A model generated the notes under the pieces. It worked only from the letters and a program-made list of their open reading frames with translations, made no database searches and was not told the origin of the DNA. From the NCBI GenBank assembly GCA_946965045.2, contig OX337235.1, forward strand, positions 434,001 through 498,000: 64,000 nucleotides of DNA, read 5' to 3'. The position numbers and the translations under genes are program-made. Below, one piece after another: positions 1 through 52,167 of this stretch (positions are counted from its first letter, which is position 1; each line of letters begins with the position of its first letter). The stretch comes from Epithemia pelagica. Lineage: Eukaryota > Protista > Bacillariophyta.

Positions 1-276
1 TCAAGTGGTCCTCAAGGTCCACAATCAAGCCTTTGGCAAAACATTCAGTGGCTGATATTGCGGTCGGAGGTCACCAACCGTGACAATCAAATTCTCAGCC
101 GTGTGGTCCTCAACAAGGCCCACAATCAAGCCTTTGGCAACTCCGCCTTGTCTCTTGGTTTGTTCCAAACCGTTGCCAATATTGCTGTTGGGGGTCACCA
201 AGGTATTGCCCTTCGAGGAGTTACGCCCCGACGAGTGCCCCCGACGAGAAGCATTCCGAGCAGCAAATGATTGCGT

Positions 277-3200
277 CCGAGGGGGGGATGTAATAAAGTA
301 CGTTGAGTTTTCTAATTGTTTGGAATACATAGGAAAACAGTACCATTGTAAAGAAAGATTACTTACGACAATAAGGAACAATCTAATTAGGACTCACAAA
401 TATACTTAGAGGTTACTTAGGATCTACGAGTTTCCAAGCAGATAAAGTGGCCGCATTTGTGTGTTGGGCGTTGTGTTTTGTGTTTTCATCATTCGTTTGG
501 AAAAAGGAAGACCTGACCATGACGAAACCTCCTACGGCCGTTGTCAGCCCCATGCCTTCCAAGGACAAGGGAAATCGTGGCATTGTGTCTTCTCCTATCT
601 CCATTGCTTCTTCTTCGTCGTCTTTGTCGTCGTGTTCATCGTCTTCGTCGTCTTTATCGTTGTGTTCATCCTCGTCGGACGCCATCTCACTCGCCTTTGT
701 ACCTTTGGACGGTACCTTCGTTCCAAAGATGGATGAATGCACTGGGAGCAACACCGATGCTCACAGTGTTCATTCCGATCCTTGGTACCTTGCCAAGTTG
801 GAGAAAATGTAAGTTTGATTGTTGTTTTTCGTCATTGTCGACCAGTCTTCCTTCCTGCAACTCTTCCTTCCTTCCTCTCTTTCTGCGCGCGTGCCCCGCC
901 TCATCCATTTTTGAATTCGTTGCTGTGTTTACCGTGCAAAACAAACCTCACACTTTTTCTTCCATTGCCATTTTTGCATCCCATTGAAGGAAACAAAAGA
1001 CCATGGCCAAGACTCCGCTCCGCCCCCGTCGATCTAAACGCAAGCTGCTGCTGCAGCAGCCAAGAAGAGGTACCGCGATGAAGAGATAGACGACATTCCT
1101 CGCCCTCCTGTTCGGAAGGTTACAAAGAAGGTTCATCCGAAGAAGAAACTTCCTCCTCCCACCGTTGACAATGGGAAGGAAAACGTTCCTCCTCCTCCTT
1201 GTCACCATCCTCACCCGAAAGAAAGGTAAGTTGTTGGATCATCATTACCGTCGTCTTTTCTGTATGATTGTTGTGTCTGACAAGAATGGCCTCCTCTTTT
1301 TCAGCACCAATGGGAAGAAGGATCGTCCTTCCCTTTTCGACGAGGAAGACGACGACGAAGAAGACGATCGTCTTCCTCCTCTTGTTCCTTATCTTCCGGA
1401 GTAAGTTGAGGATGAGATACTCCCTTCTTTTGTATGATTGTTGTGTCTCACACGAATGTCGTTCTTTCTTTCAGGGACGATGACGATGAAGATGAAGACG
1501 ATTGGTACCACCTGTTGGAAGATACGGACGACGAGGAACCACTGGACGAACATCATCCTCCTGCTGCCATTGGTCCCCCATCTCCACTCGATACACGAAC
1601 CATTGCCATGGCATGCGTCAAGCAGAGACATGTGACCGAAAATGAGGATGGCGAGCTGATGATTGCGGAGTATCAAAAACTCCCCGTGGATGTGCCACAC
1701 ACCAAGGACAGTATTCAGTACTGGAACACCTTTGCTCGCATCAGCGAGGATGTATACGAAGACGAGAACCACAAGTACGACGTTCGCGAGCTCTCGCAGA
1801 ACTCGGAGTCGTTCAACAAGGCCATAGCAGAACTCTCATTGAGAATTCAGAAGGGTAATAGGTAGTTGGGTAAAAGGCTCGCTGAGCCGACAATCGATCA
1901 CCAACCGATACAACAATCCTCCACGGGTCAGAGAAGAGTTGCAAGTCGAAGTCCGCCGTGGGTTGGGGCAGTCGGTCCACTGATAAGAGGTTAGTCTTAA
2001 GATGAGTGTTAAAATGGTGATATTGTAGTTTTCGATGTCTAGAGGTACGTCCACGATCCGTTGGATTGTCGTATGGATCACACGCTTCTCACCTCTGCTT
2101 GTTGTTTCTACTCAGATGCATTTAGCAAAAGTAACAGACTTTCTATTTGTTAAAAGTCTAGATGATTCGCACGGCGATCTCGCTGGTAAGGCGGCGATCA
2201 TCCCTCTTGACTCCGGTCACCATAAAAATGTAAAATTGACTCTTGCCAACCCTTCGTTCCGGCGTGCAGTGGATTGCAAAGGGAACATGATTGTGTAAAA
2301 CCCCAAGGATCCATGGAGCACCTACAAACTGGTCATGGAGTACCGTAGAGTTGCCCACCTGCCGGGTTGGAAAGGGCTCTTCTTCCTTCGTGAAGCACCC
2401 GCCAAAGTTATTGCCACACGCGCTGACGGATCGACTCACCGTGCCTGGACGGATCTTGTTCCTGATATGTCGAAAACAAAGATTAATCCATTGACTGGCA
2501 TGCTTCCTGGTGGAAAGTTGGGCGAAAATTTCGCTGCGCGCAAGACGAAAGAGTTGGCTAAGCGTTGTGGTTTCGAAGGAACCGACAACTTTACTGGTCG
2601 TTCCGCTCGGAGAACTGGGATCACCACGGTTGCGAACTCGGGCGTTCCTCAACCTCTTGCGACGAATTATGGCCGCCACAAGGGTGAAAAGATCAACTTT
2701 GAGTATCAAGAAGTGACGGACCACTCGAAACAGAAGGCGGTGACGGCCCATTGGTGAATGCCATCCGATGACGAAGAAGAAAGCAAAAACGGTACGTTGT
2801 TGTCTGACTGATGCATGTTGTTACTACTTCTGTATCTTACCTCTCTACTGTTCTCGTTTCAGAGGAACCTAAGAAAAAATCTCCACCAGTAGCCGCAAAA
2901 AAAGACGACGAGGACAAACCACCCCCGCTCCTTCCTCCTTCTGCATGGGACAACAACAATACAACAAACACCACACACTCTCATCACCAACACGACAACT
3001 ACCACCACAACTACCAGCGCAACGAGAGTCGCAGTCACTACCACCAACGCGACAACCACTACAATCGGTTGCCTCCTCCTCCTCCCCCTCATTTTCGATC
3101 GTACTCCTACCATTCGAGCGATCGTAACCATGGTGGGTGGACTCCTCCTCCACCTCCACCATCGTATGGACCCCGTTAGGATCATTACCGCGGGCCTTCC

Positions 3201-4180
3201 CCTCCGCCACCCCCTCCTCGATCATATTCGCCACCTCCTCCTGTTCCTTCATCCCGTGTGAATGGCCCAACGGTCCATCACTATCACCATCATTCCTTGC
3301 CACCACCGCCTCCACGTCAGTATCCTGCATCTTCTTCGTGGCCAAACCACGGCAACCACCACAGTGGCTATCACCGACATGGCGGTGATCACTACCATTA
3401 CAACCACGGGGGTCGTCACTACTGTATGACAGAATGAAATGTGTAAGTTACTTCGTTTGCTTTGCTGTCTGTCTATTGCTATTCTCTCACCATCTTCGTC
3501 TTAACAGGTTGATGCTTGAGCTCTTTGTGATGTTCGCTACAAATCCATAGGTAAGTTTGTCTTTTGCTGTTTCTTCTTGATTGCTGTGTTCTTTCCAAAG
3601 GCATGTCTAACCTTAATCTTGATTTCTCTTTGATTTTGGTCCTTCTCGAATGCCGTTTCTCTTTGATTTTGGTCCTCCTCAAATGCATTCACCCTCCCTA
3701 TTCCTTGTTGATTGTTGTCTCTTAATGGCTCTCTTCGATTTCTGTTGTTGCTGGTGCTATCTGTTGTTTTTGCTTTGTCTTGCCTTTGTCTTTGCCTTTC
3801 TCTGCCTTGCCTTCCTTCTTTAGTTGTCGACTTGTCTCGCCTTGTGTCTCTCTTTGGTTGGTTTTCATGTCTCGCCTTTATCCTTTGGTCTGGTTGGTTG
3901 TGATGTCCTTTTTGTTACATTGTCTTTGTCCTGGCTCTGCTGTTGTTTGTTCTTGTTGCTATTGTTGTTCTTGTTGCTATTGTTGTTGCTGTTGTTGCAC
4001 GCGGTTTGTTTTTCGTGGTCTGTTTCGGCTCATTTTGTGACGGTTTCCGTTCGCCTCATTTTTTCGGTTTTTCCCACGACCAAAAATTTTACTTATATAC
4101 ACTAAAATTAAAATTTGAGTACAGTAAAAATTCGGGCTATAGTAACTAGGCACGTGCGGGGGGAATACATCCCCCCGAGG
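277..4180 (+). mobile_element. Crypton-like tyrosine-recombinase DNA transposon, copy 1 (defective)
   Basis: 6-bp terminal direct repeat CCGAGG (277-282, 4175-4180) with inner inverted arms GGGGGATGTA / TACATCCCC. Internal spliced YR gene; no RT. Confidence 0.8.
519..3436 (+). pseudogene. Spliced tyrosine recombinase gene (Crypton/DUF3504-like), inactivated
   Basis: GT..AG introns near 810-988, 1226-1303, 1401-1474, 2046-2115, 2792-2861. C-terminal motifs FTGRSARRTGITT...GRHK...FEY. Lesions: 1-bp deletion near 1040, replacement at 1824-2023, TAA at 2296-2298, TGA at 2755-2757. Confidence 0.8.
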
Positions 4181-4929
4181 ATCAGCGGTCGTCCTCAACA
4201 AGGCACACAATCAAGCCTTTGGCAACTCCGCCTTGTCTCTTGGTTTGTTCCAAACCGTTGCCAATATTGCTGTTGGGGGTCACCAAGGGTGGTTGGACCA
4301 TTCCTGTGGATTGTGCTGCCCCTACGATGACAATGATCCACGATGCTGCTGCAATGCCAAGGCCGATGAGGCTACCATTGTCATGGCTCGAGTGGCGGCG
4401 GCCGCTGGTCCCATGGAACAAGTCATGCCAAGATTTTGCACAGTGACTTGGAAGACTTTGTTTGCTTGGAACTTTGTCAAAGTGGGAGTGCCACCTTTGA
4501 ACATGTCCACGATTGTACCTTCAACTTTGTGTACAATCCCGTTGACAAGGCCTTGACCAAGGTCCATTAAGTGTTTGGGGGATTGTAGTGGACAAGGTTC
4601 GTCGATTGGAGGCACGTGGAGCTCGGCTCCGGTTTCCGATACACCATTCTGAAAATAGGATGGAGCGTTAAGTATATACATGAATAGAAAAAGAAGATTG
4701 CAATCACAGCAGTTTACTTCCTGGAGGAGTTGTGGAAGCCAAGGCGTTTGGACGGGGACACGTGTAGAAGAGGGTCATTTCATGCAGGGTTTGCTCGTTG
4801 AAAGATTGGGTTGTGAGGGTGTGTGCGAGATTTGTTTTCCCATGTTGCAACCAAACCTTTTAGTGTGTCGACACTGTCCATGGCGGGGCCTCTGGGACAA
4901 ACAAACAAAGGAACAAAAATTGCAATCGA

Positions 4930-6240
4930 TTACCGCTTCTTCTTTGGCGTTTGCTTCTTCTTATTCTTCTTCTTTTTCTTTTTGGATGCAGCAGCCATGA
5001 GACGGGTCGGATCGGGTGCCTTTTGCAACCGATACAAGAGTAATTGATTGGAGACATCGTATCGAATTTCCACATTTTGCCACAATCGTTGTTGTTCTTG
5101 TTCTTGTTTGTGGTTGGTGGTGGTGGCAGAACCATTCGAATTGGGAAAGAGGACGGGCCAAAAGTATTCGGGTTGCGACAGGGACCAAATGCAATAATAT
5201 CCCAATGGTTTCAAGACGCGATGGACGGCCTGCATCATGGAATGGACTTGGACTTGTCGACGATCGTGATGGGGATAGGTACAAGAGAGTGGATCGAGCA
5301 AGCCCTTGTCGACCACGGCCTGTATGGAATTGGGACGAAGATTGGGAATCCCATTCGTGGTTTGCGAGGACAATTCCGTCGCATTGTCCAGATACAATTG
5401 CATGCGACCCGCCTCGATTTGATCGTGACACAAGCGAGATTGGACTTGAATGACGGGAGAGGACCAATCGACTTGAATAATGGGGCCTCGATAATACTGT
5501 GGGGGTTGATTGGCCATGTCCCACCCCAATCGTGAGACACCGCATCCGAGAATCAAGACGGGTTCCTTACTATCATTGTTGTTGTTGTTGGAACGAGTAC
5601 TCGAGTTGGTTGTGGATGGTATCCACAACGAGCCACGGTCCTCTCTTTTTCTCGTGTCGCTCTCAATGACACTGTCTTGTTCTTCTTCTTCTTCTTTTTC
5701 CTCCTCCTCTTCCAACTCGGCATTATCACTGTCGTAATCTTTGTCATTGTCGTAGTCGTCTTGCGGTGGCGACAAACCCAGGGTTTTCCACAGAGTTGTG
5801 GTATGCAAGGTGGCCAGTGGATCGTCCTCTTACTTTTTGGTTGAATTGGTTCGCAGTTGGTCCACGTCAAACGTGGTGAGAAACAAGTGTGTTGGTGGTT
5901 GTGCTTCTTCGTTTGAACCGTATGGTCCTTGTGGTGGTGGTGGCGGTGGCACGGGAAGTGGATGATAGGAATAGGATTGCAAGGCGGCATGCGAGACATG
6001 ACCCCATTCACCGGCTGGATTGGTATTGGATCCCGCCGTGGCCAAGAGTGACGACACGGACCCACTGTTGCGATGCGCATAATCCCAGTACACGACGGAT
6101 CCATAACGATGGACGGGCAAACAAAAGTCCAAGGTTTGCCACACCCACTGCTTCCATCGATCCCACATATGCCGATTTCGTAACAACTTTAAGGCGGAAG
6201 AAGAACGGGTCGTCGTCGTCATGATGGTGTCTGGTTCCAA
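4930..6240 (-). pseudogene. Class I SAM-dependent methyltransferase (EEF1AKMT4/METTL13-N-like), one in-frame stop
   Basis: YGSVVYWDYAH, VLILGCGVSRLG (motif I), QVDWS, NSIQAVVDKGLLD. TAA at 5830-5832 where the intact paralog 48774-50078 reads Q. Confidence 0.85.
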
Positions 6241-6463
6241 TCGAATCTATAATAGCTTTCGTTGTTCTCGTCTTCTGTGTGTCTCCTCTCGTGAAAATCT
6301 TTCCGGAGAAATGGACGGACCGGATGACAAAGCCGGCTGGAGGACAGACGCTTTTACGGAGTGTGGACAGACGCCTTAAACCATGACCAAACGCGACCTG
6401 ATCGGGAAAGAAACGCACTTCAAACGCACCTATTTCGATCGAATCTGTTCGGGAGGGCCACAC

Positions 6464-31213: not shown

Positions 31214-32488
31214 GTGTCTACAACTCAACGCAACAACAACAACAATAGAACTCTTGTCGCGATACGGAGTAATCGAGGCTCTACCAACAACGAGGGGGGA
31301 GAGGTTGGAGGGGGCAATGACGGAACCGGCCCATCTAAAAAGAACCGTAAAGTGACCATAAGGAAGACACGCCAAATCTTGAAAGCTAGCTCTCCGAATC
31401 CACCAGAGGACAGCAAAACACTTGGTAACTACTTGGAAGACACTTGGTTCAAGACAAATATGTCACAAGAATTTAAAGACTTTATTCGAAGTCAATCGAT
31501 CAAAATGTTGAAAGAAAATCCTAAACTCTCTGCAGCTTTTCAAGACTATTTGAAGATTGACTTGGCACATTTTTTGACAACAGGAAAAGTAGCTCGTATG
31601 GATCTTTCCCCCAATGAATCCCAGAGAGTGGCCTTGATCGACTTTGACATCAAAAACAACGCTATGTTTTACAAACGAGACTTGAATGCATTCAATGCTC
31701 GAGTGGAAGAACTTTTCAAATGGAAAGACTCCACAAAAGACGAGTACATGGCTCCGTATTTTCCGCTCATCCAATCGAGTGGAACTGGCAAGACCAAATT
31801 GCTACACGAATGCAAAAAGATGTTTAACAGTGACAATCAAAGCGACGTTCACTGCGAACTTATTCTGTGCCATTATGGTGAAGTCACGCACTTAGCATGG
31901 GGCAGTGACATATTCTCCGACACTCTGGACGTTAAATCAATTGGAACCACCCAAGATGGCCGAGAAACGCTGTGGAAGAAGTTGGATGCTTTTGTAGAGA
32001 AGGCAAGAACGAAAAAGGTCGTGCTGCTATTTGACGAGTCCCAACACCTCATCAACAATGGTGATGGGTTTTATTTTCGAAGCATACGATGGTGGCTTCG
32101 AAAAGAACGAAATGAACATAACATTGTTGGCGTGTTTGCAGGAACAAGCATGAGTTTGGCAAACTACTTTCCGGAACCACCGCAGAATTCATACTACTCA
32201 AGAAATGTAAGACCAACATACAACTCAGGCAAAAGAATGTATGCTCCATTTTTCGAAATCACAACGAATGGACTTGTTTCAATCACCAATGGTTCCGAAT
32301 TCGATAAAGAATCTTCTACAGAGTTTGATGTTGCAGTTCAATATGGGCGCCCGTTGTTCGCTCGGATGCATCTAAAGGGTGATTTGAAAGATGCGTTGGA
32401 CTCAATTTTGCTTCGGATGAAAGGTGGGACCTACAAGATTGAATTGGAGTACCCTCTCTTGGATAAGGACGACAACGACGAATGGTGA
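31214..32488 (+). pseudogene. 3'-truncated NTPase gene N (X copy), joined by deletion to an M' fragment
   Basis: Walker A IQSSGTGKTK, Walker B VLLFDESQH; homology with the full 771-aa copies stops at ELE (about 32449). Confidence 0.88.
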
Positions 32489-33110
32489 TTCAAGTCGATT
32501 GCAGTCCGCACATTGTAAAACTGTCGAGTATTTCCAGGAAAATTCGATTCTCGCCGTACTGGACAAGGGATTGATGGATCCGTTTGTCTCGTACCTATGC
32601 CCATCACACGATGGACGATCGAAACACGTGCACGAAATTTTTCGAGCTGTCCATCGCGTCTTGAAACCCAATGGGTATTTATTGTATCTGGTCCCTGTCG
32701 CAACCCGAATTCTTGTTGCCCGTGTTGGAACAAGAAAATCTCATTCAACCCACTTCCGACCATGAGGATGATACCGACAATCCAAAACACGTATCGCAAT
32801 TATCAACCCTTGACATCCCTGTCATTATCATCGTCTTCCACCCAATCTCCAACGATTCTGACGCGAACGCCTCGCCATCCCATTACAGGAAACCCTACTT
32901 GTGGCAACGGGTGGACATTCGCCATGATATTACCAATCAATTCCTCTTGTATCGGTTTCAAAAGGCGGCGTGGAGTGATCCGTTCCCAACGACACGTCGC
33001 GGAGGTGGTGCGCAACCATTCTCCTCCCGCTTGCCACGCCATTCGTCTCACAACAAGAAGAAGAATAACCATCGACAACTAGGAGCTTTAGAAAAAACAA
33101 ACACACAAAA
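32450..33110 (+). pseudogene. 3' fragment of methyltransferase M'
   Basis: ENSILAVLDKGLMDPF..VHRVLKPNG..YCIWSLSQPEFL; frameshifted. Confidence 0.8.
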
Positions 33111-33415
33111 GTAGACACACAAAAGAAAGACTTTTGCCACACCAAAAAAGAGCCATGACGGATGAATTCTACCTAAAGACACGCATCTACACTATATCGA
33201 AAGGAACGCGTGTGGATCCTACCAAACGCACCAGAAAATGTATTTGTGTGCGAGCTTGCGCGCAATAAAAAAAGGACGCTATGGATGTTTTTCCCCTTCT
33301 ATTATAGGTATATGCTTAAATCTCCATCCTATTTTCAGGATGTTGCATCGCAAACCGGAGCAGGGCTCAACGTGTCTCCACTCGACGAAACCTGCATATA
33401 CTGCAATGCCCAAAC

Positions 33416-34444
33416 TTAATTGGCCTTGGTCAAGGCCTTGCCAACGGGGTTGTACACAAAGTTGAAGGTACAATCGTGGACATGTTCAAAGGTGGCACTG
33501 CCACTTTGACGAAGTTCAAAGCAAACAAAGTCTTCAAAGTCACCGTGCGAAATCTTGGCATGGCGGTAACTGACTTGTTCAATGGGACCAGCGGCAGCAG
33601 CAACACGGGCAACGACAATGGTAGCCTCATCGGCCTTGGCATTGCAGCAGCATCGTGGATCATCGTCATCGTAGGGGCAGCACAATCCACAAGAACGGTC
33701 CAACCACCCTTGGTGACCACCAACAGCAATATCGGCAACGGTTTGGAACAACCCAAGAGACAAGGCGGAGTTGCTAAAGGCTTGGTTGTGGGCCTTGAGA
33801 ACCACTTGGTTGAGAGTTTGATTGTCATGGTCCGACAATTCGTGGGGCAAGCCAATCAAGGTGAGCTGGGCCTCGGTGATTTCGCCATGTCCATAGGCCG
33901 TTTCGACGGGTCCAATGGTGTTCAAGCCAGTGTGTTCCAAAAAGGAAAAGGTACAGTCCTTGGCATGAACTAAATTGACATATGAGGACTTTTGAAGACG
34001 GTCGCACAAGTCATATTGGAACTGTTCGTGAAGAAGACCAAGATCGGCCGTGGCACCCAACACACTGTCCTTGTAATAAAAGACATCGACTTGAGCATTG
34101 ATAAAGGCAGCTTCTTCCTGGCTATTCTTTACAAGCGAAGTACTGCTGGGTGTCCACCAGAAGGAGTCGGAAGGAATGGTGGAGAAGCCTTGAGTCTTGA
34201 TATCGCCCAACTTTTGGCCCGCCTTGTCGAAACCAAAGGCCTGGTTGTATGCTGCCTGAGCTTGCTTGGTAATAAAGTTGGCTTCCTCGTCCGAGACCAT
34301 GTCCGAAAGACCACCCACGACAATGCGAGCATTGTACGATTCCGTCGAGGCACTGGCAACCATTTCTTGAAAGGCAGCACGCAAGCTAAAGTCGGCGGCA
34401 GCCGAAGAGAAGAGCATGGTGAGAGCAGCAAGAGAAAGCTTCAT
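33416..34444 (-). CDS. Secreted two-repeat protein S of unknown function (342 aa)
   Basis: Signal-peptide-like MKLSLAALTMLFSSAAA; two internal repeats ending LCDRL..HAKDCTFSF and VCFEL..HVHDCTFNF; CGLCCPYDDDD motif. ORF intact in three copies. Confidence 0.9.
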   Translation of the reverse strand: MKLSLAALTMLFSSAAADFSLRAAFQEMVASASTESYNARIVVGGLSDMVSDEEANFITKQAQAAYNQAFGFDKAGQKLGDIKTQGFSTIPSDSFWWTPSSTSLVKNSQEEAAFINAQVDVFYYKDSVLGATADLGLLHEQFQYDLCDRLQKSSYVNLVHAKDCTFSFLEHTGLNTIGPVETAYGHGEITEAQLTLIGLPHELSDHDNQTLNQVVLKAHNQAFSNSALSLGLFQTVADIAVGGHQGWLDRSCGLCCPYDDDDPRCCCNAKADEATIVVARVAAAAGPIEQVSYRHAKISHGDFEDFVCFELRQSGSATFEHVHDCTFNFVYNPVGKALTKAN

Positions 34445-35244
34445 GGTGAATGTACTTGTTTTTTAAAATCGGTGCAAAGACTTAACGTTCTGCTGGTGCG
34501 ATGGAGGCTTTTTGGTTTTGCCGTTCGGGAAATTGTGAGCAAAGTGAGAGATCTGGAATTTGGAGTGATGTGGGTCCACAAGGCCACGTGTCGTCTGAGT
34601 GGGATTACAGCGGAAACATTTCATTGGAACGTTACCTAGTGTTGATAGCGTCTCGGTCACGGGAAGTGAGATGTGACCCATGCATCTATCCAGATTTGTT
34701 TGGCGTGTTTTGGTAGTGGAAGAATGTCATGAGAATGTTTTCCTCTATTAGTCGACACAGCATTGAGATCTGATTGGCTGTTTACTTCGTTAGTAGGGCA
34801 AGTCCTTAGGCCGGCTGCGTCCTTAATGTGTGTTGTCGGTTGGATCTTGTGGGTTGTCGTTTTCTCGCTGGCTTTGATTGGTTGTTTCGATGCAGCGTGG
34901 TCTATACACAAACTAACAACTAACACTCTCAACGAAAAAAGGAGAACAACTATACGAACACGAGTATGTTTCCAGATTCCCGAACATCATCATCATCATC
35001 CTTTTTGGCTCCTTGATGCCATTGGTGGAATAGACCCAGTCTACTTGCTCCGTATGCTCAAGTGGCTCTCGAGAGTGTATTCCCGATTGTGGAATTTATT
35101 TCTCCGCCCCCCCCGCCTTGCACTCAACCCAATCCTCGCTCCCCGTAAATAAAAGGGGGAGGAATCCCATGGATAGGGATAGCATTGATAGTAGGAATTG
35201 ATGATTGATGAATAGGAGTAGCAGTGGAGGGAGTATTTTTGCTA

Positions 35245-36535: not shown

Positions 36536-37417
36536 CATTACTCCTCAATGCGACAATTGTCGTGGCCTTCGTAGAATCAGTAATGGGAATCAACACATAG
36601 AAGCTCCACAGTAGACCCAAAAAATACAGTGATATCGACGAGCTCGTCGCCTAATATGTTCTTTTGGGTTCATGCTATCTTCCAGCTATCCATGCTACCC
36701 CTATTCTCCACCCTTCTGTATCGGTGTGCATAATGTGGGGGAGGGGGGGGGGGGAACATAATCATAAATCATATTCAGGGAACACGGGAATAGATGACCA
36801 ATCAGCCAATCACAGCAGCATAATTTACGACCAATGAGCATTCGGTCTTTTCCACCAATGGTATCAAGTATATCAAAGAGCCAGAACCTCCGGGACGGGG
36901 ATGGACGAACACCTTTGTCGTTGTAGATCTCTTTTTGCTGGGAGACTGCTGGTTGTGTCTACTCGTAGGGTCTAGACGACGCTATATCTGAACAACCAAT
37001 AAAAACCAACGAGAAAATGTCAGCACACAAGGTCCATCCAACAAAAAGAACGCATCCGGTTTCAAGTCCTTGCCCTACTTACGAGGCGCTCCTAAATCCT
37101 AAACCACCAATCCGATCGCAACGGTGTATATCGACTTAAAGAGGAAACATTCCACTGCGATTCGCCCACTATAACGAAATGTGCCAATCCAAACTAATGC
37201 ATTGAAAGGCAAACACGACCACGCCTTACTGGGCCCCTTGTCCCAATGTGTTTTCTTTTTTATCCCATTGTTCCCATCGAGACTCTGTCTCCGCCCTCCT
37301 CAAAATTCCATCTCTCACTTTGCTCACAATTTTCCAAACGGCAAAACCAAAAAGCCTCCATCGCACCAGCAGAATGTTAAGTCTTTGCACCGATTTTAAA
37401 AAACAAGTACATTCACC

Positions 37418-38446
37418 ATGAAGCTTTCTCTTGCTGCTCTCACCATGCTCTTCTCTTCGGCTGCCGCCGACTTTAGCTTGCGTGCTGCCTTTCAAGAAAT
37501 GGTTGCCAGTGCCTCGACGGAATCGTACAATGCTCGCATTGTCGTGGGTGGTCTTTCGGACATGGTCTCGGACGAGGAAGCCAACTTTATTACCAAGCAA
37601 GCTCAGGCAGCATACAACCAGGCCTTTGGTTTCGACAAGGCGGGCCAAAAGTTGGGCGATATCAAGACTCAAGGCTTCTCCACCATTCCTTCCGACTCCT
37701 TCTGGTGGACACCCAGCAGTACTTCGCTTGTAAAGAATAGCCAGGAAGAAGCTGCCTTTATCAATGCTCAAGTCGATGTCTTTTATTACAAGGACAGTGT
37801 GTTGGGTGCCACGGCCGATCTTGGTCTTCTTCACGAACAGTTCCAATATGACTTGTGCGACCGTCTTCAAAAGTCCTCATATGTCAATTTAGTTCATGCC
37901 AAGGACTGTACCTTTTCCTTTTTGGAACACACTGGCTTGAACACCATTGGACCCGTCGAAACGGCCTATGGACATGGCGAAATCACCGAGGCCCAGCTCA
38001 CCTTGATTGGCTTGCCCCACGAATTGTCGGACCATGACAATCAAACTCTCAACCAAGTGGTTCTCAAGGCCCACAACCAAGCCTTTAGCAACTCCGCCTT
38101 GTCTCTTGGGTTGTTCCAAACCGTTGCCGATATTGCTGTTGGTGGTCACCAAGGGTGGTTGGACCGTTCTTGTGGATTGTGCTGCCCCTACGATGACGAT
38201 GATCCACGATGCTGCTGCAATGCCAAGGCCGATGAGGCTACCATTGTCGTTGCCCGTGTTGCTGCTGCCGCTGGTCCCATTGAACAAGTCAGTTACCGCC
38301 ATGCCAAGATTTCGCACGGTGACTTTGAAGACTTTGTTTGCTTTGAACTTCGTCAAAGTGGCAGTGCCACCTTTGAACATGTCCACGATTGTACCTTCAA
38401 CTTTGTGTACAACCCCGTTGGCAAGGCCTTGACCAAGGCCAATTAA
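37418..38446 (+). CDS. Secreted two-repeat protein S (342 aa, identical to 33416-34444)
   Basis: ORF-track translations are identical. Confidence 0.9.
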   Translation: MKLSLAALTMLFSSAAADFSLRAAFQEMVASASTESYNARIVVGGLSDMVSDEEANFITKQAQAAYNQAFGFDKAGQKLGDIKTQGFSTIPSDSFWWTPSSTSLVKNSQEEAAFINAQVDVFYYKDSVLGATADLGLLHEQFQYDLCDRLQKSSYVNLVHAKDCTFSFLEHTGLNTIGPVETAYGHGEITEAQLTLIGLPHELSDHDNQTLNQVVLKAHNQAFSNSALSLGLFQTVADIAVGGHQGWLDRSCGLCCPYDDDDPRCCCNAKADEATIVVARVAAAAGPIEQVSYRHAKISHGDFEDFVCFELRQSGSATFEHVHDCTFNFVYNPVGKALTKAN

Positions 38447-38747
38447 GTTTGGGCATTGCAGTATATGCAGGTTTCGTCGAGTGGAGACACGTTGAGCCCT
38501 GCTCCGGTTTGCGATGCAACATCCTGAAAATAGGATGGAGAGTTAAGCATATACATATAATAGAAGGGGAAAAGCATCCATAGCGGCCTTTTTCTATTGC
38601 GCGCAAGCTCGCACACAAATTCATTTTCTGGTGCGTTTGGTAGGATCCACACGCGTTCCTTTCGATATAGTGTAGATGCGTGTCTTTAGGTAGAATTCAT
38701 CCGTCATGGCTCTTTTTTGGTGTGGCAAAAGTCTTTCTTTTGTGTGT

Positions 38748-39412
38748 CTACTTTTGTGTGTTTGTTTTTTCTAAAGCTCCTAGTTGTCGATGGTTATTCT
38801 TCTTCTTGTTGTGAGACGAATGGCGTGGCAAGCGGGAGGAGAATGGTTGCGCACCACCTCCGCGACGTGTCGTTGGGAACGGATCACTCCACGCCGCCTT
38901 TTGAAACCGATACAAGAGGAATTGATTGGTAATATCATGGCGAATGTCCACCCGTTGCCACAAGTAGGGTTTCCTGTAATGGGATGGCGAGGCGTTCGCG
39001 TCAGAATCGTTGGAGATTGGGTGGAAGACGATGATAATGACAGGGATGTCAAGGGTTGATAATTGCGATACGTGTTTTGGATTGTCGGTATCATCCTCAT
39101 GGTCGGAAGTGGGTTGAATGAGATTTTCTTGTTCCAACACGGGCAACAAGAATTCGGGTTGCGACAGGGACCAGATACAATAAATACCCATTGGGTTTCA
39201 AGACGCGATGGACAGCTCGAAAAATTTCGTGCACGTGTTTCGATCGTCCATCGTGTGATGGGCATAGGTACGAGACAAACGGATCCATCAATCCCTTGTC
39301 CAGTACGGCGAGAATCGAATTTTCCTGGAAATACTCGACAGTTTTACAATGTGCGGACTGCAATCGACTTGAATCACCATTCGTCGTTGTCGTCCTTATC
39401 CAAGAGAGGGTA
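38748..39412 (-). pseudogene. 3' fragment of methyltransferase M' (mirror of 32450-33110)
   Basis: Same 147-aa and 161-aa partial peptides as the X arm. Confidence 0.8.
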
Positions 39413-39548
39413 ACTTAGGGGGGCACCGACAAGGAAAGTTTCAAATTGGCCAACGACCAATAACGACCAACGCTTTATGCAAAAAGTAGAAATGGCGAGG
39501 TGGTATGCTCTCTTGTTCTTCTTTTTTACTGCAATAGGAGAAAAGTAT

Positions 39549-41864
39549 TTAGATGTCATTTTCTTGCAAGGCGTCCTCAAAGCCCTTTGCGATCTCTTGC
39601 AAAAACTCGGATGATGGGATCTGCTTCAGTGTCTCGTCTCGCAGCAACCGCTCAAAGCTTTTTCCACTTCCCAATGCAACGTCTGAATGAGACACCATGA
39701 CCTCCGACTTTTCCCCTCCTCCACGAGTCGAAGAAGCGGCGAGCTTGGTCGCTCCAAAACGGTCATTGGCAGGCACTTCGATTATAAATGTCGAAATTGA
39801 ACCACGGGAGAAATTCATACCAGGGCCGGGGTTTTGCGATGGATCCTTGAGGCCAATCAGTAAGAGAATACACAACCCAGTTTCAATGCCAGCGCCCTTA
39901 AACACCTTTTCCATGGCGCTGAGTGCACTCTGGCGTTCCTCGGGAGTGTAAGATAGTCGATTCTTTACGCTCACTAGCATGGGACAATAGTGATCATGAT
40001 TATTGTGTTTGTATCGCACAGGTATCACCAGGTCGTAAGCTGGGCAAGAGGCATATGCATAGGATGCCCTTGCACTTCGATACCAGTGCTCCAAAAGGCC
40101 ACTCTCCTGCAGTTCTTTTAGGCTGTAACGCAAGTAATTACGACACACTTGGATGAAATTGACGCTTGCTTCTCCAGTGCTATCAACGCTAGATGAATCA
40201 TCATCGTTGCCTTGCAGTCTTTTGATAAATTTCTCGAGTGGAACAGAGAGTTGTAACAGATCTTGTGATTTTTCCCAGCGCAACTCGTCTCCACAAGCTA
40301 GCATGTAAAAAGCAGCCGCGACTTGACCAACATCTCCCTTTTCAGGACGACACAATGCAGACGTATACATCTTGATGGCAAATTCGGACCAGAAAGAAGG
40401 AGGTTGAGAAAAGGCGCCAAAAGACTCGCAGTTCTCAATCATTTGGGACATGGCAAGCCATGCGCATACCGGATCCGGAAGGTACGCAATATCTGCGACA
40501 GATGGTTGTTCCGGGTCAAAATGAGTGAGATGGGCATACCCCGAAGCCACTTGTTTTGACGCAAGATCAAATGAAACTTGGCCCAATGGCAGACGAGCTG
40601 CCAAAATTGAAAAACATGAACTCACGTTCTCCAATTCAATCTTGTAGGTCCCACCTTTCATCCGAAGCAAAATTGAGTCCAACGCATCTTTCAAATCACC
40701 CTTTAGATGCATCCGAGCGAACAACGGGCGCCCATATTGAACTGCAACATCAAACTCTGTAGAAGATTCTTTATCGAATTCGGAACCATTGGTGATTGAA
40801 ACAAGTCCATTCGTTGTGATTTCGAAAAATGGAGCATACATTCTTTTGCCTGAGTTGTATGTTGGTCTTACATTTCTTGAGTAGTATGAATTCTGCGGTG
40901 GTTCCGGAAAGTAGTTTGCCAAACTCATGCTTGTTCCTGCAAACACGCCAACAATGTTATGTTCATTTCGTTCTTTTCGAAGCCACCATCGTATGCTTCG
41001 AAAATAAAACCCATCACCATTGTTGATGAGGTGTTGGGACTCGTCAAATAGCAGCACGACCTTTTTCGTTCTTGCCTTCTCTACAAAAGCATCCAACTTC
41101 TTCCACAGCGTTTCTCGGCCATCTTGGGTGGTTCCAATTGATTTAACGTCCAGAGTGTCGGAGAATATGTCACTGCCCCATGCTAAGTGCGTGACTTCAC
41201 CATAATGGCACAGAATAAGTTCGCAGTGAACGTCGCTTTGATTGTCACTGTTAAACATCTTTTTGCATTCGTGTAGCAATTTGGTCTTGCCAGTTCCACT
41301 CGATTGGATGAGCGGAAAATACGGAGCCATGTACTCGTCTCTTGCGGAGTCTTTCCATTTGAAAAGTTCTTCCACTCGAGCATTGAATGCATTCAAGTCT
41401 CGCTTGTACAATATTGCGCTGTTTTTGATGTCAAAGTCGATCAAGGCCACTCTCTGGGATTCATTGGGGGAAGAATCCATAGGAATTACTTTTCCTGTTG
41501 TCAAAAAATGTGCCAAGTCAATCTTCAAATAGTCTTGAAAAGCTGCAGAGAGTTTAGGATTTTCTTTCAACATTTTGATCGATTGACTTCGAATAAAGTC
41601 TTTAAATTCTTGTGACATATTTGTCTTGAACCAAGTGTCTTCCAAGTAGTTACCAAGTGTTTTGCTGTCCTCTGGTGGATTCGGAGAGCTAGCTTTCAAG
41701 ATTTGGCGTGTCTTCCTTATGGTCACTTTTCGGTTCTTTTTAGCTGGGCGGGTTCCGTCATTGCCCCCTCCAACCTCTCCCCCCTCGTTGTTGGTAGAGC
41801 CTCGATTACTCCGTATCGCGAAAAAAGTTCTATTGTTGTTGTTGTTGCGTTGAGTTGTAGACAC
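39549..41864 (-). CDS. P-loop NTPase plus PD-(D/E)xK-like nuclease (Crinkler-type NTPase-REase architecture), 771 aa
   Basis: APYFPLIQSSGTGKTK (Walker A), VVLLFDESQHL (Walker B); C-terminal KGDVGQVAA..YDLVIPV..LVSVKN. Intronless. Confidence 0.8.
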   Translation of the reverse strand: MSTTQRNNNNNRTFFAIRSNRGSTNNEGGEVGGGNDGTRPAKKNRKVTIRKTRQILKASSPNPPEDSKTLGNYLEDTWFKTNMSQEFKDFIRSQSIKMLKENPKLSAAFQDYLKIDLAHFLTTGKVIPMDSSPNESQRVALIDFDIKNSAILYKRDLNAFNARVEELFKWKDSARDEYMAPYFPLIQSSGTGKTKLLHECKKMFNSDNQSDVHCELILCHYGEVTHLAWGSDIFSDTLDVKSIGTTQDGRETLWKKLDAFVEKARTKKVVLLFDESQHLINNGDGFYFRSIRWWLRKERNEHNIVGVFAGTSMSLANYFPEPPQNSYYSRNVRPTYNSGKRMYAPFFEITTNGLVSITNGSEFDKESSTEFDVAVQYGRPLFARMHLKGDLKDALDSILLRMKGGTYKIELENVSSCFSILAARLPLGQVSFDLASKQVASGYAHLTHFDPEQPSVADIAYLPDPVCAWLAMSQMIENCESFGAFSQPPSFWSEFAIKMYTSALCRPEKGDVGQVAAAFYMLACGDELRWEKSQDLLQLSVPLEKFIKRLQGNDDDSSSVDSTGEASVNFIQVCRNYLRYSLKELQESGLLEHWYRSARASYAYASCPAYDLVIPVRYKHNNHDHYCPMLVSVKNRLSYTPEERQSALSAMEKVFKGAGIETGLCILLLIGLKDPSQNPGPGMNFSRGSISTFIIEVPANDRFGATKLAASSTRGGGEKSEVMVSHSDVALGSGKSFERLLRDETLKQIPSSEFLQEIAKGFEDALQENDI

Positions 41865-42038
41865 AATATAGCGACAAATAAGTTTGTTGTAGCAGAGTTG
41901 GATTCGTTGATACAGTGCAGTAGACGATCGAGAATGGTCGAATCATTCCGAGTGATAGTATAGCGTATAGTTTGTAATAAGTCATGCCAGAACAAGAATC
42001 CATGCCAAGCCACAGAAACATTAGTTCAAGGAAGAAAC

Positions 42039-43040: not shown

Positions 43041-43780
43041 GCAGGAAGATACTACCAATCAAGAAAACACGGGTCATGGAAAGAACAGTTCTCACAGTTT
43101 ATATACTACTCCTACTTATCGAACCGACATTGTTGGAGAGTAGTCCAAGGTAGTTGTCTGTGTTTTCGTAGGTTTCTTTCATGGAAAGAGGGAAAGTGAA
43201 AGGCTCGTCCTTTTGCGACGAACTAATCCTGATCAACCACTCCAATTATCTTCTTGCTATGATTGCTGCCCATGTCCCACGAGTCCGCCCCCTTTTAGTT
43301 GCAACACGGGTAGACTTGTTGTCAAAAGTCCTCTCGTATGTCAATTTAGTTCATGCCCAGGACTGTACCTTTTCCTTCTTGGAGCCCGCAAACAACAGTG
43401 GACCTGTCGAAACGCCCTACGGACATGGCGAAATCACCCATGTCGAGCTCACCTTGATTGGTTTGCCCCACGAATTGTCGGACCATGACAATCAAATTCT
43501 CAAATCAAGTGGTCCTCAAGGTCCACAATCAAGCCTTTGGCAAAACATTCAGTGGCTGATATTGCGGTCGGAGGTCACCAACCGTGACAATCAAATTCTC
43601 AGCCGTGTGGTCCTCAACAAGGCCCACAATCAAGCCTTTGGCAACTCCGCCTTGTCTCTTGGTTTGTTCCAAACCGTTGCCAATATTGCTGTTGGGGGTC
43701 ACCAAGGTATTGCCCTTCGAGGAGTTACGCCCCGACGAGTGCCCCCGACGAGAAGCATTCCGAGCAGCAAATGATTGCGT

Positions 43781-46700
43781 CCGAGGGGGGGATGTAATAA
43801 AGTACGTTGAGTTTTCTAATTGTTTGGAATACATAGGAAAACAGTACCATTGTAAAGAAAGATTACTTACGACAATAAGGAACAATCTAATTAGGACTCA
43901 CAAATATACTTAGAGGTTACTTAGGATCTACGAGTTTCCAAGCAGATAAAGCGGCCGCATTTGTGTGTTGGGCGTTGTGTTTTGTGTTTTCATCATTCGT
44001 TTGGAAAAAGGAAGACCTGACCATGACGAAACCTCCTACGGCCGTTGTCAGCCCCATGCCTTCCAAGGACAAGGGAAATCGTGGCATTGTGTCTTCTCCT
44101 ATCTCCATTGCTTCTTCTTCGTCGTCTTTGTCGTCGTGTTCTTATCGTTGTGTTCATCCTCGTCGGACGCCATCTCACTCGCCTTTGTACCTTTGGACGG
44201 TACCTTCGTTCCAAAGATGGATGAATGCACTGGGAGCGACACCGATGCTCACAGTGTTCATTCCGATCCTTGGTACCTTGCCAAGTTGGAGAAAATGTAA
44301 GTTTGATTGTTGTTTTTTGTCATTGTCGACCAGTCTTCCTTCCTGCGACTCTTCCTTCCTTCCTTTTTCTTCCTGCGCGCGTGCCCTGCCTCATCCATTT
44401 TTGAATTCGTTGCTGTGTTTACCGTGCAAAACAAACCTCACACTTTTTCTTCCATCGCCATTTTTGCATCCCATTGCAGGAAACAAAAGACCATGGCCAA
44501 GACTCCGCTCCGCCCCCGTCGATCTAAACGCCAAGCTGCTGCTGCAGCAGCCAAGAAGAGGTACCGCGATGAAGAGATAGACGACATTCCTCGCCCTCCT
44601 GTTCGGAAGGTTACAAAGAAGGTTCATCCAAAGAAGAAACTTCCTCCTCCCACCGTTGACAATGGGAAGGAAAACGTTCCTCCTCCTCCTTGTCACCATC
44701 CTCACCCGAAAGAAAGGTAAGTTGTTGGATCATCATTACCGTCGTCTTTTCTGTATGATTGTTGTGTCTGACAAGAATGGCCTCCTCTTTTTCAGCACCA
44801 ATGGGAAGAAGGATCGTCCTTCCCTTTTCGACGAGGAAGACGACGACGAAGAAGACGATCGTCTTCCTCCTCTTGTTCCTTATCTTCCGGAGTAAGTTGA
44901 GGATGAGATACTCCCTTCTTTTGTATGATTGTTGTGTCTCACACGAATGTCGTTCTTTCTTTCAGGGACGATGACGATGAAGATGAAGACGATTGGTACC
45001 ACCTGTTGGAAGATACGGACGACGAGGAACCACTGGACGAACATCATCCTCCTGCTGCCATTGGTCCCCCATCTCCACTCGATACACGAACCATTGCCAT
45101 GGCATGCGTCAAGCAGAGACATGTGACCGAAAATGAGGATGGCGAGCTGATGATTGCGGAGTATCGAAAACTCCCCGTGGATGTGCCACACACCAAGGAC
45201 GGTATTCAGTACTGGAACACCTTTGCTCGCATCAGCGAGGATGTATACGAAGACGAGAACCACAAGTACGACGTTTGCGAGCTCTCGCAGAACTCGGAGT
45301 CGTTCAACAAGGCCAAGGCGGACTCTTTCAAACGATTCTTGGACATTCTCCGTCGCCATAAATACTATAGAGGACTCGCGGCGCCCATCATTGATCCTGA
45401 TACTGAAAAGGGCGAGAATTTGAAGGTGCCCAAGCTTTTTGTTGCTCTCAGGGGGGGGTATTACTCGTGGCAAACTTGGGTTGTTGAATTCTCTCTGCAT
45501 GATTTTCTGCATGAATCTGCGCATGGCTGGGTACAAAAAGGGGGAGCACGATCCCCACGACCCCAAGTATCACTACCAGCCAAACACGACCGGCAAAGTG
45601 CTCAATCACATCTTTTCCATCCTGCGAGCCAATGGAGTCGTGATCACGCAGTCGGACCTCAAAGGGGAGGGCTCGTACCATGCCTACTTGGAGAACTTGT
45701 GGTCGGAAACCGCCACCGTCCGTTCTGAGTTTGGCGGAGTTTGCCTCAACGACGAGAAGTCCATGCGAAAGTATGCGAGTCCTCCACTTCGTCCGTTCGA
45801 AATTTACAGGGATCTCCTCACGATGGTGTTCTACAAAGTCTGCCGTGACTGTAGTTTTCGATATCTAGAGGTACGTCCACGATCCGTTGGATTGTCGTAT
45901 GGATCACACGCTTCTCACCTCTGCTTGTTGTTTCTACTCAGATGCATTTAGCAAAAGTAACAGACTTTCTATTTGTTAAAAGTCTAGATGATTCGCACGG
46001 CAATCTCGCTGGTAAGGCGGCGATCATTCCTCTTGACTCCGGTCACCATAAAAATGTAAAATTGACTCTTGCCAACCCTTCGTTCCGGCGTGCAGTGGAT
46101 TGCAAAGGGAACATGATTGTTGAAAACCCCAAGGATCCATGGAGCACCTACAAACTGGTCATGGAGTACCGTAGAGTTGCCCACCCGCCGGGTTGGAAAG
46201 GGCTCTTCTTCCTTCGTGAAGCACCCGCCAAAGTAATTGCCACACGCGCTGACGGATCGACTCACCGTGCCTGGACGGATCTTGTTCCTGATATGTCGAA
46301 AACAAAGATTAATCCATTGACTGGCATGCGTCCTGGTGGAAAGTTGGGCGAAAATTTCGCTGCGCGCAAGACGAAAGAGTTGGCTAAGCGTTGTGGTTTC
46401 AAAGGAACCGGCAACTTTACTGGTCGTTCCGCTCGGAGAACTGGGATCACCACGGTTGCGAACTCGGGCGTTCCTCAACCTCTTGCGACGAATTATGGCC
46501 GCCACAAGGGTGAAAAGATCAACTTTGAGTATCAAGAAGTGACGGACCACTCGAAACAGAAGGCGGTGACGGCCCATTGGTGAATGCCATCCGATGACGA
46601 AGAAGAAAGCAAAAAAGGTACGTTGTTGTCTGACTGATGCATGTTGTTACTACTTCTGTATCTTACCTCTCTACTGTTCTCGTTTCAGAGGAACCTAAGA

Positions 46701-48024
46701 AAAAATCTCCACCAGTAGCCGCGAAAAAAGACGACGAGGACAAACCACCCCCGCTCCTTCCTCCTTCTGCATGGGACAACAACAATACAACAAACACCAC
46801 ACACTCTCATCACCAACACGACAACTACCACCACAACTACCAGCGCAACGAGAGTCGCAGTCACTACCACCAACGCGACAACCACTACAATCGGTTGCCT
46901 CCTCCTCCTCCCCCTCATTCTCGATCGTACTCCTGCCATTCGAGCGATCGTAACCATGGTGGGTGGACTCCTCCTCCACCTCCACCATCGTATGGACCCC
47001 GTTACGATCATTACCGCAGGCCTTCCCCTCCGCCACCCCCTCCTCGATCATATTCGCCACCTCCTCCTGTTCCTTCATCCCGTGTGAATGGCCCAACAGT
47101 CCATCACTATCACCATCATTCCTTGCCACCACCGCCTCCACGTCAGTATCCTGCATCTTCTTCGTGGCCAAACCACGGCAACCACCACAGTGGCTATCAC
47201 CGACATGGCGGTGATCACTACCATTACAACCACGGGGGTCGTCACTACTGAATGACAGAATGAAATGGGTAAGTTACTTCGTTTGCTTTGCTGTCTGTCT
47301 ATTGCTATTCTCTCACCATCTTCGTCTTAACAGGTTGATGCTTGAGCTCTTTGTGATGTTCGCTACAAATCCATAGGTAAGTTTGTCTTTTGCTGTTTCT
47401 TCTTGATTGCTGTGTTCTTTCCAAAGGCATGTCTAACCTTAATCTTGATTTCTCTTTGATTTTGGTCCTTCTCGAATGCCGTTTCTCTTTGATTTTGGTC
47501 CTCCTCGAATGCATTCACCCTCCCTATTCCTTGTTGATTGTTGTCTCTTAATGGCTCTCTTCGATTTCTGTTGTTGCTGGTGCTATCTGTTGTTTTTGCT
47601 TTGTCTTGCCTTTGTCTTTGCCTTTCTCTGCCTTGCCTTCCTTCTTTAGTTGTCGACTTGTCTCGCCTTGTGTCTCTCTTTGGTTGGTTTTCATGTCTCG
47701 CCTTTATCCTTTGGTCTGGTTGGTTGTGATGTCCTTTTTGTTACATTGTCTTTGTCCTGGCTCTGCTGTTGTTTGTTCTTGTTGCTATTGTTGTTCTTGT
47801 TGCTATTGTTGTTCTTGTTGCTATTGTTGTTGCTGTTGTTGCACGCGGTTTGTTTCTCGTGGTCTGTTTCGGCTCATTTTGTGACGGTTTCCCTTTGCCT
47901 CATTTTTTCGGTTTTTCCCACGACCGAAAATTTTACTTATATACACTAAAATTAAAATTTGAGTACAGTAAAAATCGGGCTATAGTAACTAGGCACGTGC
48001 GGGGGGAATACATCCCCCCCGAGG
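43781..48024 (+). mobile_element. Crypton-like tyrosine-recombinase DNA transposon, copy 2 (more complete)
   Basis: CCGAGG direct repeats at 43781-43786 and 48019-48024; perfect 10-bp inner inverted arms GGGGGATGTA / TACATCCCCC. Confidence 0.82.
44023..47251 (+). pseudogene. Spliced tyrosine recombinase gene with Pro/His/Tyr-rich tail
   Basis: KYHYQPNTTGKVLNHIF (core-binding-like); candidate catalytic residues R (FYKVCR), K (HHKNVK), R-x-x-R (GRSARR), H (GRHK), Y (FEY). Frameshifts near 44140 and 45540; TGA at 46581-46583. Confidence 0.82.
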
Positions 48025-48773
48025 ATCAGCGGTCGTCCTCAACAAGGCCCACAATCAAGCCTTTGGCAACTCCGCCTTGTCTCTTGGTTTGTTCCAAACC
48101 GTTGCCAATATTGCTGTTGGGGGTCACCAAGGGTGGTTGGACCATTCCTGTGGATTGTGCTGCCCCTACGATGACAATGATCCACGATGCTGCTGCAATG
48201 CCAAGGCCGATGAGGCTACCATTGTCATGGCTCGAGTGGCGGCGGCCGCTGGTCCCATGGAACAAGTCATGCCAAGATTTTGCACAGTGACTTGGAAGAC
48301 TTTGTTTGCTTGGAACTTTGTCAAAGTGGGAGTGCCACCTTTGAACATGTCCACGATTGTACCTTCAACTTTGTGTACAATCCCGTTGACAAGGCCTTGA
48401 CCAAGGTCCATTAAGTGTTTGGGGGATTGTAGTGGACAAGGTTCGTCGATTGGAGGCACGTGGAGCTCGGCTCCGGTTTCCGATACACCATTCTGAAAAT
48501 AGGATGGAGCGTTAAGTATATACATGAATAGAAAAAGAAGATTGCAACCACAGCAGTTTACTTCCTGGAGGAGTTGTGGAAGCCAAGGCGTTTGGACGGG
48601 GACACGTGTAGAAGAGGGTCATTTCATGCAGGGTTTGCTCGTTGAAAGATTGGGTTGTGAGGGTGTGTGCGAGATTTGTTTTCCCATGTTGCAACCAAAC
48701 CTTTTAGTGTGTCGACACTGTCCATGGCGGGGCCTCTGGGACAAACAAACAAAGGAACAAAAATTGCAATCGA

Positions 48774-51971: not shown

Positions 51972-52167
51972 GCTTTCCGTTGAACGGACCAATTATGTTT
52001 TTTCAGTTACCGCGCCTGCTTGCAATGCCGTGTGACTGCGAGAGGGAAAGTCAACTCGTTTCTGATTGCAAGCATGCCAGTCACACAAACACAACGGAGT
52101 GCTCAGAAGAAGAACTTCACGTCGTTGTCTCGCAATCTCTTGCCATCATAAATTTTGTCTCAATGAA

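Follow-up and report, generated by a model that had tools for sequence, protein, structure and literature searches.

Two related copies of an intron-rich element with tyrosine-recombinase motifs lie in a 64,000-nt stretch of the genome of the diatom Epithemia pelagica (NCBI GenBank assembly GCA_946965045.2, contig OX337235.1, positions 434,001 to 498,000 of the forward strand; this whole stretch is called the window, and coordinates count from its first letter). Both copies show the hexamer CCGAGG and inverted arms near their ends. This raises the question of whether these motifs bound a mobile element and form a simple recombination site once joined, as a sequence-only reading of the window had proposed. 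Comparison with further copies in the same genome gave a different answer. Very likely, the block goes back to one old insertion, made by a young family of diatom Cryptons and since left-truncated, decayed and duplicated together with host DNA, and the true ends of the element are TAATATT on the left and GGTCG on the right.

The window copies derive from a single duplicated insertion

The two copies were delimited as follows.

204..4191, plus strand, 3,988 bp: Crypton copy 1, a left-truncated pseudogene, homologous to the full-length copies L002, L003 and L005 from 204 to 4191-4193
43708..48035, plus strand, 4,328 bp: Crypton copy 2, with truncated left junction and flanks as in copy 1

Window positions 1-1824 align with 43505-45315 at 98.2% identity and 2024-6312 with 45850-50169 at 96.8%, flanks included in both cases. 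Because both flanks were duplicated together with the element, copies 1 and 2 are not independent. To place them in the family, we compared copies 1 and 2 with further loci (L numbers) of the same assembly. The catalytic exon of the recombinase gene fell into a 90% cluster of eight proteins, and the loci of those proteins were compared; locus L001 (ctg1297l, ENA assembly ERZ21939226) is 100% identical to window 39942-52583. Public sequence data consisted of assembled contigs of four runs from the same organism. The informative loci were these.

L002, ctg1258l: full length; flanks unrelated to other sites
L003, ctg1325l: full length; flanks unrelated to other sites
L005, ctg1334l: full length; flanks unrelated to other sites
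L006, ctg1348l: older copy without the first 10 nt; flanks unrelated to other sites
L008, ctg1297l, ~19 kb before the window start: flanks are those of the window copies
L007, ctg1180l: right flank tcctcaacaagg, which is the right flank of the window copies

L008 and both window copies have the identical left-truncated junction caccaagg/TATTGCCC (here and below a slash marks a junction). Since flanks and junctions are common to them, copies 1 and 2, L008 and L007 represent one insertion spread by host duplications. Elsewhere the family appears recently active: L002 and L003 are 99.5% identical, and copies overall 96-99.5%.

True ends and target site

Alignment of the full-length copies identified both ends. 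In L002, L003 and L005 homology starts at TAATATTACATTTGC (the left end is also written TAATATTACA...), that is, at TAATATT, and in L006 it starts 10 nt further inside. The right end reads ATCAGCGGTCG in 8/8 copies (with GGTTG in L007), and flanks differ among five independent sites. From L002, L003, L005 and L006, all in unrelated flanks, the true ends lie 223 bp to the left and 11 bp to the right of CCGAGG, giving a full element of ~4.49 kb. At least five independent insertion sites are represented, namely L002, L003, L005, L006 and the host-family site occupied by the window copies.

These ends change how the motifs flagged earlier must be read. CCGAGG is indeed present at 277-282, 4175-4180, 43781-43786 and 48019-48024, but it does not bound the element, because the shared sequence runs on past it at both sides. 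The inverted arms also exist, as GGGGGGGATGTA (281-292) and as TACAT plus a C-run (4166-4176), and are internal to the element. GCGT and ATCA, taken as the sides of an empty site GCGT-CCGAGG-ATCA, are element sequence, which refutes that empty site. The sequence-only reading had named copies with different boundaries as grounds for its own refutation, and L002, L003, L005 and L006 are such copies.

Insertions adjoin TGTKG rather than CCGAGG. The 5-mer directly left of the element is TGTGG in L002, TGTTG in L003 and TGTGG in L005. At the host-family site, an uninterrupted host unit ccgTGTGG/tcctc stands exactly where the right junction reads GCGGTCG/tcctc, and a sister family represented by L009 has TGTTG/TAATAC on its left and CGGTAG/t on its right. 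The 5-mers at the full copies, in the host unit and at L009 therefore place integration just after T-G-T-K-G. This target motif resembles the element's own right end, G-G-T-C-G. The ends TGTKG/TAAT... and ...GGTCG/t have only GT.G(T) in common; the true ends carry no terminal inverted repeat. The single copy of another sister family, L010 (3360-3400), seems to end in ...GGTAG/TAGTTCT ACATCTGC, which contains TAGT.

Joined ends rebuild a long palindrome with directional heptamers

Joining the true ends of L003 produced an imperfect palindrome of ~265 nt with a predicted folding energy of -96.8 kcal/mol (DNA parameters). Its base is TACATCCCCCCC / GGGGGGGATGTA, the very arms noticed earlier, and the junction GGTCG/TAATATT lies 27 nt inside its left arm. 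The contiguous left-end part folds by itself at -73.4 kcal/mol (z = -14.2). Complementary blocks of the palindrome alternate with heptamers CGA(G/C)GAG, or CCGAGG/CCGAGC, ~14 of them in the joined form. The heptamers have the same orientation on both arms and consequently stay unpaired, as bubbles. Exact CGASGAG occurs nine times in 165 bp of L003, always on the plus strand, where 3.5 occurrences are expected over the whole 14.7-kb locus on both strands.

The two CCGAGG hexamers are the outermost pair of this heptamer array. In the joined form they stand 234 bp apart, as do the arms named with them. Inverted arms set directly around a 6-8 bp overlap, as in a simple loxP- or dif-like site, are thus not formed at the real junction. 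The proposed 10-6-10 string can be composed from copy 2, and from that copy only because its C-run has 7 C there and 6 C in copy 1. It never arises from real ends, because the element does not end at CCGAGG. A 7-7-7 hairpin seen at 4157-4177 is present as described; of the three intact copies, L002 and L003 carry two substitutions that weaken it.

Two sister families in the same genome, L009 (protein P0002, 60% identity) and L010 (P0003, 69%), have the same layout, with no heptamer on the minus strand in either. Of 72 predicted pairs, 10 are altered on both sides and still paired. The predicted joined ends of L009 rebuild the palindrome at -96.9 kcal/mol. The palindrome and heptamers may act in recombination at the joined ends. 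A more speculative extension, which we consider improbable on present analysis, is that the split palindrome would serve as a folded substrate (cruciform or single-strand hairpin) for the recombinase with Arg in place of His, described below, the roughly seven 7-nt bubbles per arm marking strand and orientation. If true, this would be a eukaryotic analogue of integron attC and CTX-phage recombination in a distinct diatom Crypton lineage.

The element encodes a tyrosine recombinase with Arg at the box II His position

The six-exon, five-intron gene recognized in the window is intact in L002, L003 and L005. In L003, five GT-AG introns (183, 79, 74, 71 and 71 nt) interrupt the gene for an unbroken 927-aa open reading frame (ORF); the ORFs of L002 (935 aa) and L005 (932 aa) are intact as well. 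No copy that covers the five introns has lost any of them, and GT-AG is retained. For the intron within box I (...SFRCLE/MHLAKVTDF...), confirmation came from two homologues that read straight across it: P0029, in a transcriptome of Entomoneis paludosa, and P0052, in the Cylindrotheca fusiformis set of EukProt.

The protein consists of a Cre-like core-binding domain, a catalytic domain and a Pro/His/Tyr-rich tail, with the catalytic signature R...K...R-x-x-R-R...R-H...Y. Its catalytic core was located in copy 2.

45942..46580, plus strand: catalytic core in exon 5 of copy 2, with the beta-hairpin Lys region, box II GRSARRTG, RH and the nucleophile Tyr (FEYQE)

A phmmer search with the 213-aa catalytic exon against 1.84 billion representatives returned 90 relatives at E ≤ 0.001, 40 of which form alignment A1. 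D65, R187 and Y197 are invariant in A1, and R162, R165, R166 and H188 nearly so; Arg I, in the R-x-x-E that closes exon 4, does not vary either. Box II reads R-[ST]-x-R-R-T, with Arg at the usual tyrosine-recombinase His position in 38/40 aligned diatom homologues. GRSARR in place of H-x-x-R, first remarked on in the window, is thus no peculiarity of a damaged copy. The low-complexity tail is equally real, since Pro/Gln/His/Tyr-rich tails recur in many A1 members. Judged from the aligned homologues, the R-x-x-R-R box and the low-complexity tail are family features, not decay.

Profile and structural comparisons agreed with this assignment. Searched against PDB, the A1 profile matched XerA best (E = 0.35), with RxxR on HxxR, RH on GH and Y on Y, aligning the catalytic positions of the recombinase that the sequence-only reading had called. 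An AlphaFold2 model of the catalytic exon reached a predicted local distance difference test score (pLDDT) of 85.6, and its exhaustive structural alignment gave XerA (Z 6.7), Cre (6.6) and QRICH1 (6.1). Every one of the top 19 matches was a tyrosine recombinase, a type IB topoisomerase or a DUF3504 protein. The exon-4 domain model (pLDDT 66.1; 76-93 per 10-residue block over residues 111-250) matched the N-terminal domain of Cre (Z 8.8), ALOG (8.3) and QRICH1 (7.9). In a language-model atlas the catalytic exon fell among Phage_integrase clusters (0.96). Foldseek against PDB gave weak rows only for the catalytic exon, QRICH1 (E = 0.2) and then Cre. On these models, the protein is a tyrosine recombinase.

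Other searches added little. A phmmer search of PDB sequences with the catalytic exon found nothing relevant; homology searches with P0029 (region 400-760) and with profile A1 gave one new match only, P0102, from the same assembly; and exact-protein look-up of a short shared ORF returned the known locus only. No Pfam family is recorded for the genes called within the element, and intact copies hold the recombinase gene only. With neither an ORF nor a Pfam match for reverse transcriptase or RNase H among these called genes, the kept introns, at least five independent sites and a recombinase fold, the earlier assignment to a Crypton-like family held.

Decay and truncation of the window copies

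Both window copies begin at position 143 of the full element. About 142 bp of the left end are absent from both, together with another 12 bp near 270. Of the 223 bp left of CCGAGG, 73 bp (204-276) are retained, and these match no host paralogue. Only three exact heptamers and the distal right arm of the palindrome are left. Contigs from the public runs extend leftward past 204 into the palindrome of full copies. The parts of the element in the window are listed below; the exon map was transferred from intact L003.

204..292, plus strand: right-arm remnant of the end-spanning palindrome, copy 1, with heptamers at 214, 229 and 242, CCGAGG at 277-282 and arm GGGGGGGATGTA at 281-292
519..3425, plus strand: recombinase pseudogene of copy 1, exons 519-808, 990-1225, 1305-1400, 1475-2044, 2116-2791 and 2863-3425
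1825..2023, 199 bp: unrelated filler in copy 1, replacing 534 bp of exon 4 (45316-45849 in copy 2)
4157..4191, plus strand: true right end of copy 1, with hairpin 4157-4177, TACAT plus C-run 4166-4176, CCGAGG 4175-4180 and terminal ATCAGCGGTCG at 4181-4191
44023..47251, plus strand: recombinase pseudogene of copy 2, exons 44023-44296, 44480-44716, 44796-44891, 44966-45870, 45942-46617 and 46689-47251

Both window genes are pseudogenes. Copy 1 has a 1-bp deletion in exon 2 (1041) and stops at 2296, 2755 and 3177, and its spliced reading contains 26 in-frame stops. In copy 2, exon 1 is shortened by 16 bp (44142), the poly-G tract of exon 4 holds one additional G near 45451, 18 bp are deleted at 45735, and TGA interrupts the frame at 46581. 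Without the left arm the window copies are unable to rebuild the joined-end site, and they are very probably immobile.

Contig depth over the filler at 1825-2023 is ~100 times that of its flanks in the public runs, which identifies the filler as a high-copy or highly abundant sequence of the organism. It has no second copy in the window or compared loci and no credible match in Rfam. Contigs from the public runs carry normal exon-4 sequence on both sides of it.

The stop at codon 729 (window 2755 and 46581) is TGA in copies 1 and 2 and TAA in L008. A TAG at codon 846 (window 3177) is common to copy 1 and L008 and is not found in copy 2, yet copy 2 and L008 are the closest pair overall (99%). 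This mismatch between stop sharing and overall identity suggests gene conversion among the paralogous copies. Length varies in the exon-4 poly-G tract (45451-45458): 7 G stand in L003, 8 G in copy 2, with a frameshift as the result, and more in L005, where the frame is kept and ~8 Gly are encoded. From these lengths, the tract looks like a slippage-prone switch inside the recombinase gene.

The left junction at 203/204 was considered as a recombinase product at a pseudo-site and rejected. GGACC/TATTG and GGTCG/TAATA match at only 7/11 positions, and the junction was therefore taken for a breakpoint close to the palindrome centre, left by deletion or repair. Palindromes are fragile. Two routes to the truncation can be sketched, both with low confidence. 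Tandem B units of the host gene (listed below) may have pre-existed, with insertion at the TGTGG that starts the second unit and a later deletion of ~170 bp covering the inter-unit linker and the left arm. Alternatively, a break near the palindrome centre may have been followed by copying of ~100 bp from the empty allele or a paralogue and then by end-joining.

Host gene family and surroundings

The insertion lies in a minus-strand repeat-protein gene built of tandem units of ~100 bp (33 aa), with motifs such as AKGLIVGLVEDH.

1-300 and 4192-5400, minus strand: host gene stretches at the insertion site
95..203, minus strand: host repeat unit B, left of copy 1, with the uninterrupted target-like ccgTGTGG/tcctc at about 103-116
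4192..4288, minus strand: host repeat unit B', which duplicates 112-203 in direct orientation; the host gene goes on from 4289
38031-38565, 33831-33297, 62338-61800, 29553-29090 and 55825-55362: host paralogues in the window

One host unit flanks copy 1 on both sides (95-203 against 4182-4288, 96-98%). Paralogues 38031, 33831(-) and 62338(-) are contiguous through unit B (alignment A2), while host homology at the insertion stops at 203 and resumes by 4192. The host family has at least five paralogues in the window, and unit number differs among them.

The window is patched together from recent segmental duplications. One inverted repeat, 2.1 kb long and perfect (100%), joins 32450-34552 and 37310-39412 across a 2.76-kb spacer and could be an assembly artefact; a 2.8-kb inverted repeat at 94% joins 39514-42332 and 57514-60332. 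Outside the window, the left neighbour of intact L002 (L002 1-2963, ctg1258l) is a Copia-type retrotransposon ORF with Pol_BBD, rve and RVT_2.

Weighing the explanations

The history that we favour runs as follows. The element would have landed at TGTGG inside the minus-strand repeat-protein gene, then lost its left-most ~142 bp while its gene decayed to a pseudogene. Later duplication of the host segment raised the number of paralogous copies to at least four: the two window copies, a third ~19 kb before the window start and a fourth on another contig. In mobile copies, the recombinase presumably excises the element as a circle. End joining would give GGTCG/TAATATT and so complete the ~265-nt imperfect palindrome with its ~14 same-strand CGA(G/C)GAG heptamers, after which the circle would integrate next to T-G-T-(G/T)-G in the target.

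Several observations weigh against this account. The left 5-mer is always of the target type and the right one always GGTCG, so that the strict repeat comprises only G and the following T (4/5 sites), shorter than the 4-6 bp described for Cryptons. The true junction GGTCG/TAATATT is absent from the compared loci and from JGI metagenome contigs. Neither a circle junction nor an empty allele turned up in the public runs, whose assembled contigs are unable to reveal circles or rare alleles. A 109-bp host duplication stands beside the truncated copy without a certain explanation. For the protein, structural Z-scores of the catalytic exon are moderate (<8), and Pfam found no integrase domain in the exon translations or in ten long homologues, with the exception of a weak Phage_integrase match in P0045 (E = 0.004).

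Could the element nevertheless end at CCGAGG, integrate there and form the joined site TACATCCCCC-CCGAGG-GGGGGATGTA, in the manner of loxP? The motifs do occur where this model needs them, and the 12-bp inverted arms are conserved in 8/8 copies. Against this, sequence common to independent copies extends beyond CCGAGG by 223 bp on the left and 11 bp on the right, the hexamer is one of ~14 iterated heptamers, the two copies that supported the model are one duplicated insertion, and its 26-mer junction TACATCCCCCCCGAGGGGGGGATGTA is absent from all compared loci; the copy boundaries refute the model. Segmental duplication of a host gene with a recombinase-like sequence, with no transposition at all, accounts for the flanks common to copies 1 and 2, L008 and L007, and is true for the copies in and near the window. 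As an explanation of the family it is refuted: L002, L003, L005 and L006 sit in unrelated flanks, identical sharp ends recur in three of these four, and L002 and L003 are 99.5% identical.

A remnant of a DIRS/Ngaro-type retroelement that lost its reverse transcriptase would also have a tyrosine recombinase, which DIRS elements use, and ends that match an internal region in the circle. It is likewise highly implausible: introns with conserved GT-AG are kept in every spanning copy, and neither reverse transcriptase nor RNase H was found among the genes called within the element. More deserving of attention, if still unlikely, is the possibility that the palindrome and heptamer array is a promoter, 5′ untranslated region, replication or silencing element rather than a recombination site. 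The array lies ~220-450 bp upstream of the ATG with all heptamers on the coding strand, and their direct orientation suits a transcription-factor array or an RNA hairpin with internal loops. However, the palindrome is split by the element ends and whole only when they are joined, in two families, which is hard to explain unless the joined form matters, and compensatory changes keep both arms complementary. Taken together, these comparisons favour a truncated and duplicated Crypton insertion. The annotation is corrected accordingly: both window copies are dead, left-truncated duplicates of one insertion in an expanding host gene family, and provide no evidence for a loxP-like site.

Comparison with known systems

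To our knowledge, Crypton biochemistry is almost unknown, and we know of no Crypton recombination site that has been defined experimentally. The present family offers a concrete candidate joined-end site, with a 265-nt palindrome covarying between families, directional heptamers and an Arg-for-His box, and intact, recently moved copies exist for experiments.

With the folded-DNA recombination sites integron attC and CTX phage attP, the family may share an imperfect palindrome in which non-complementary positions would set the hairpins of the two strands apart. The likeness is by analogy, and the bubbles differ, being 7 nt long and about seven per arm. Cre/loxP, XerA and XerCD/dif offer a structural match in both domains of the protein (Cre Z 8.8 N-terminal and 6.6 catalytic; XerA 6.7). 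Unlike Cre/loxP and dif, the true junction has no 13-8-13 site, and its position within the long imperfect palindrome is asymmetric. Crypton-derived host domains (DUF3504 of QRICH1/ZMYM, ALOG and Ndc10) rank with the best structural matches of both protein domains, as expected for a Crypton-type recombinase. Published DUF3504 domains lost most of the catalytic tetrad (PMC3212892), whereas the protein here keeps Arg I, Arg II, His/Trp III and Tyr.

Cryptons were known in one diatom, Phaeodactylum tricornutum, and CryptonS in stramenopiles including oomycetes (Kojima & Jurka 2011, PMC3212892). The family would fit the cycle of circle excision and integration proposed for fungal Cryptons (Goodwin and co-workers 2003, summarised in PMC3212892). 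As in those elements, no terminal inverted repeats or long terminal repeats form the true ends, and crossover may run through short terminal repeats. CryptonF of fungi differs in its GCR1_C domain and in direct repeats that are perfect over 6 bp (PMC3212892), neither of which was found here. The family resembles CryptonS (PMC3212892) as a stramenopile recombinase-only DNA transposon without GCR1_C, with an extended C-terminal region and a low copy number. CryptonS termini are mostly TATGG (PMC3212892), similar to but not the same as the target-side TGTGG/TGTTG, and unlike CryptonS the end 5-mers here are non-identical (TGTKG left, GGTCG right). Box II carries Arg where the published R-H-R-Y tetrad has His (PMC3212892), and 'palindrom' occurs 0 times in PMC3212892, in contrast to the split 265-nt palindrome with heptamers found here. 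Three features depart from the published description of Cryptons: box II with Arg for His, end 5-mers that match imperfectly, and a palindrome divided between the ends, with heptamers all in one direction. The family is possibly a new Crypton lineage.

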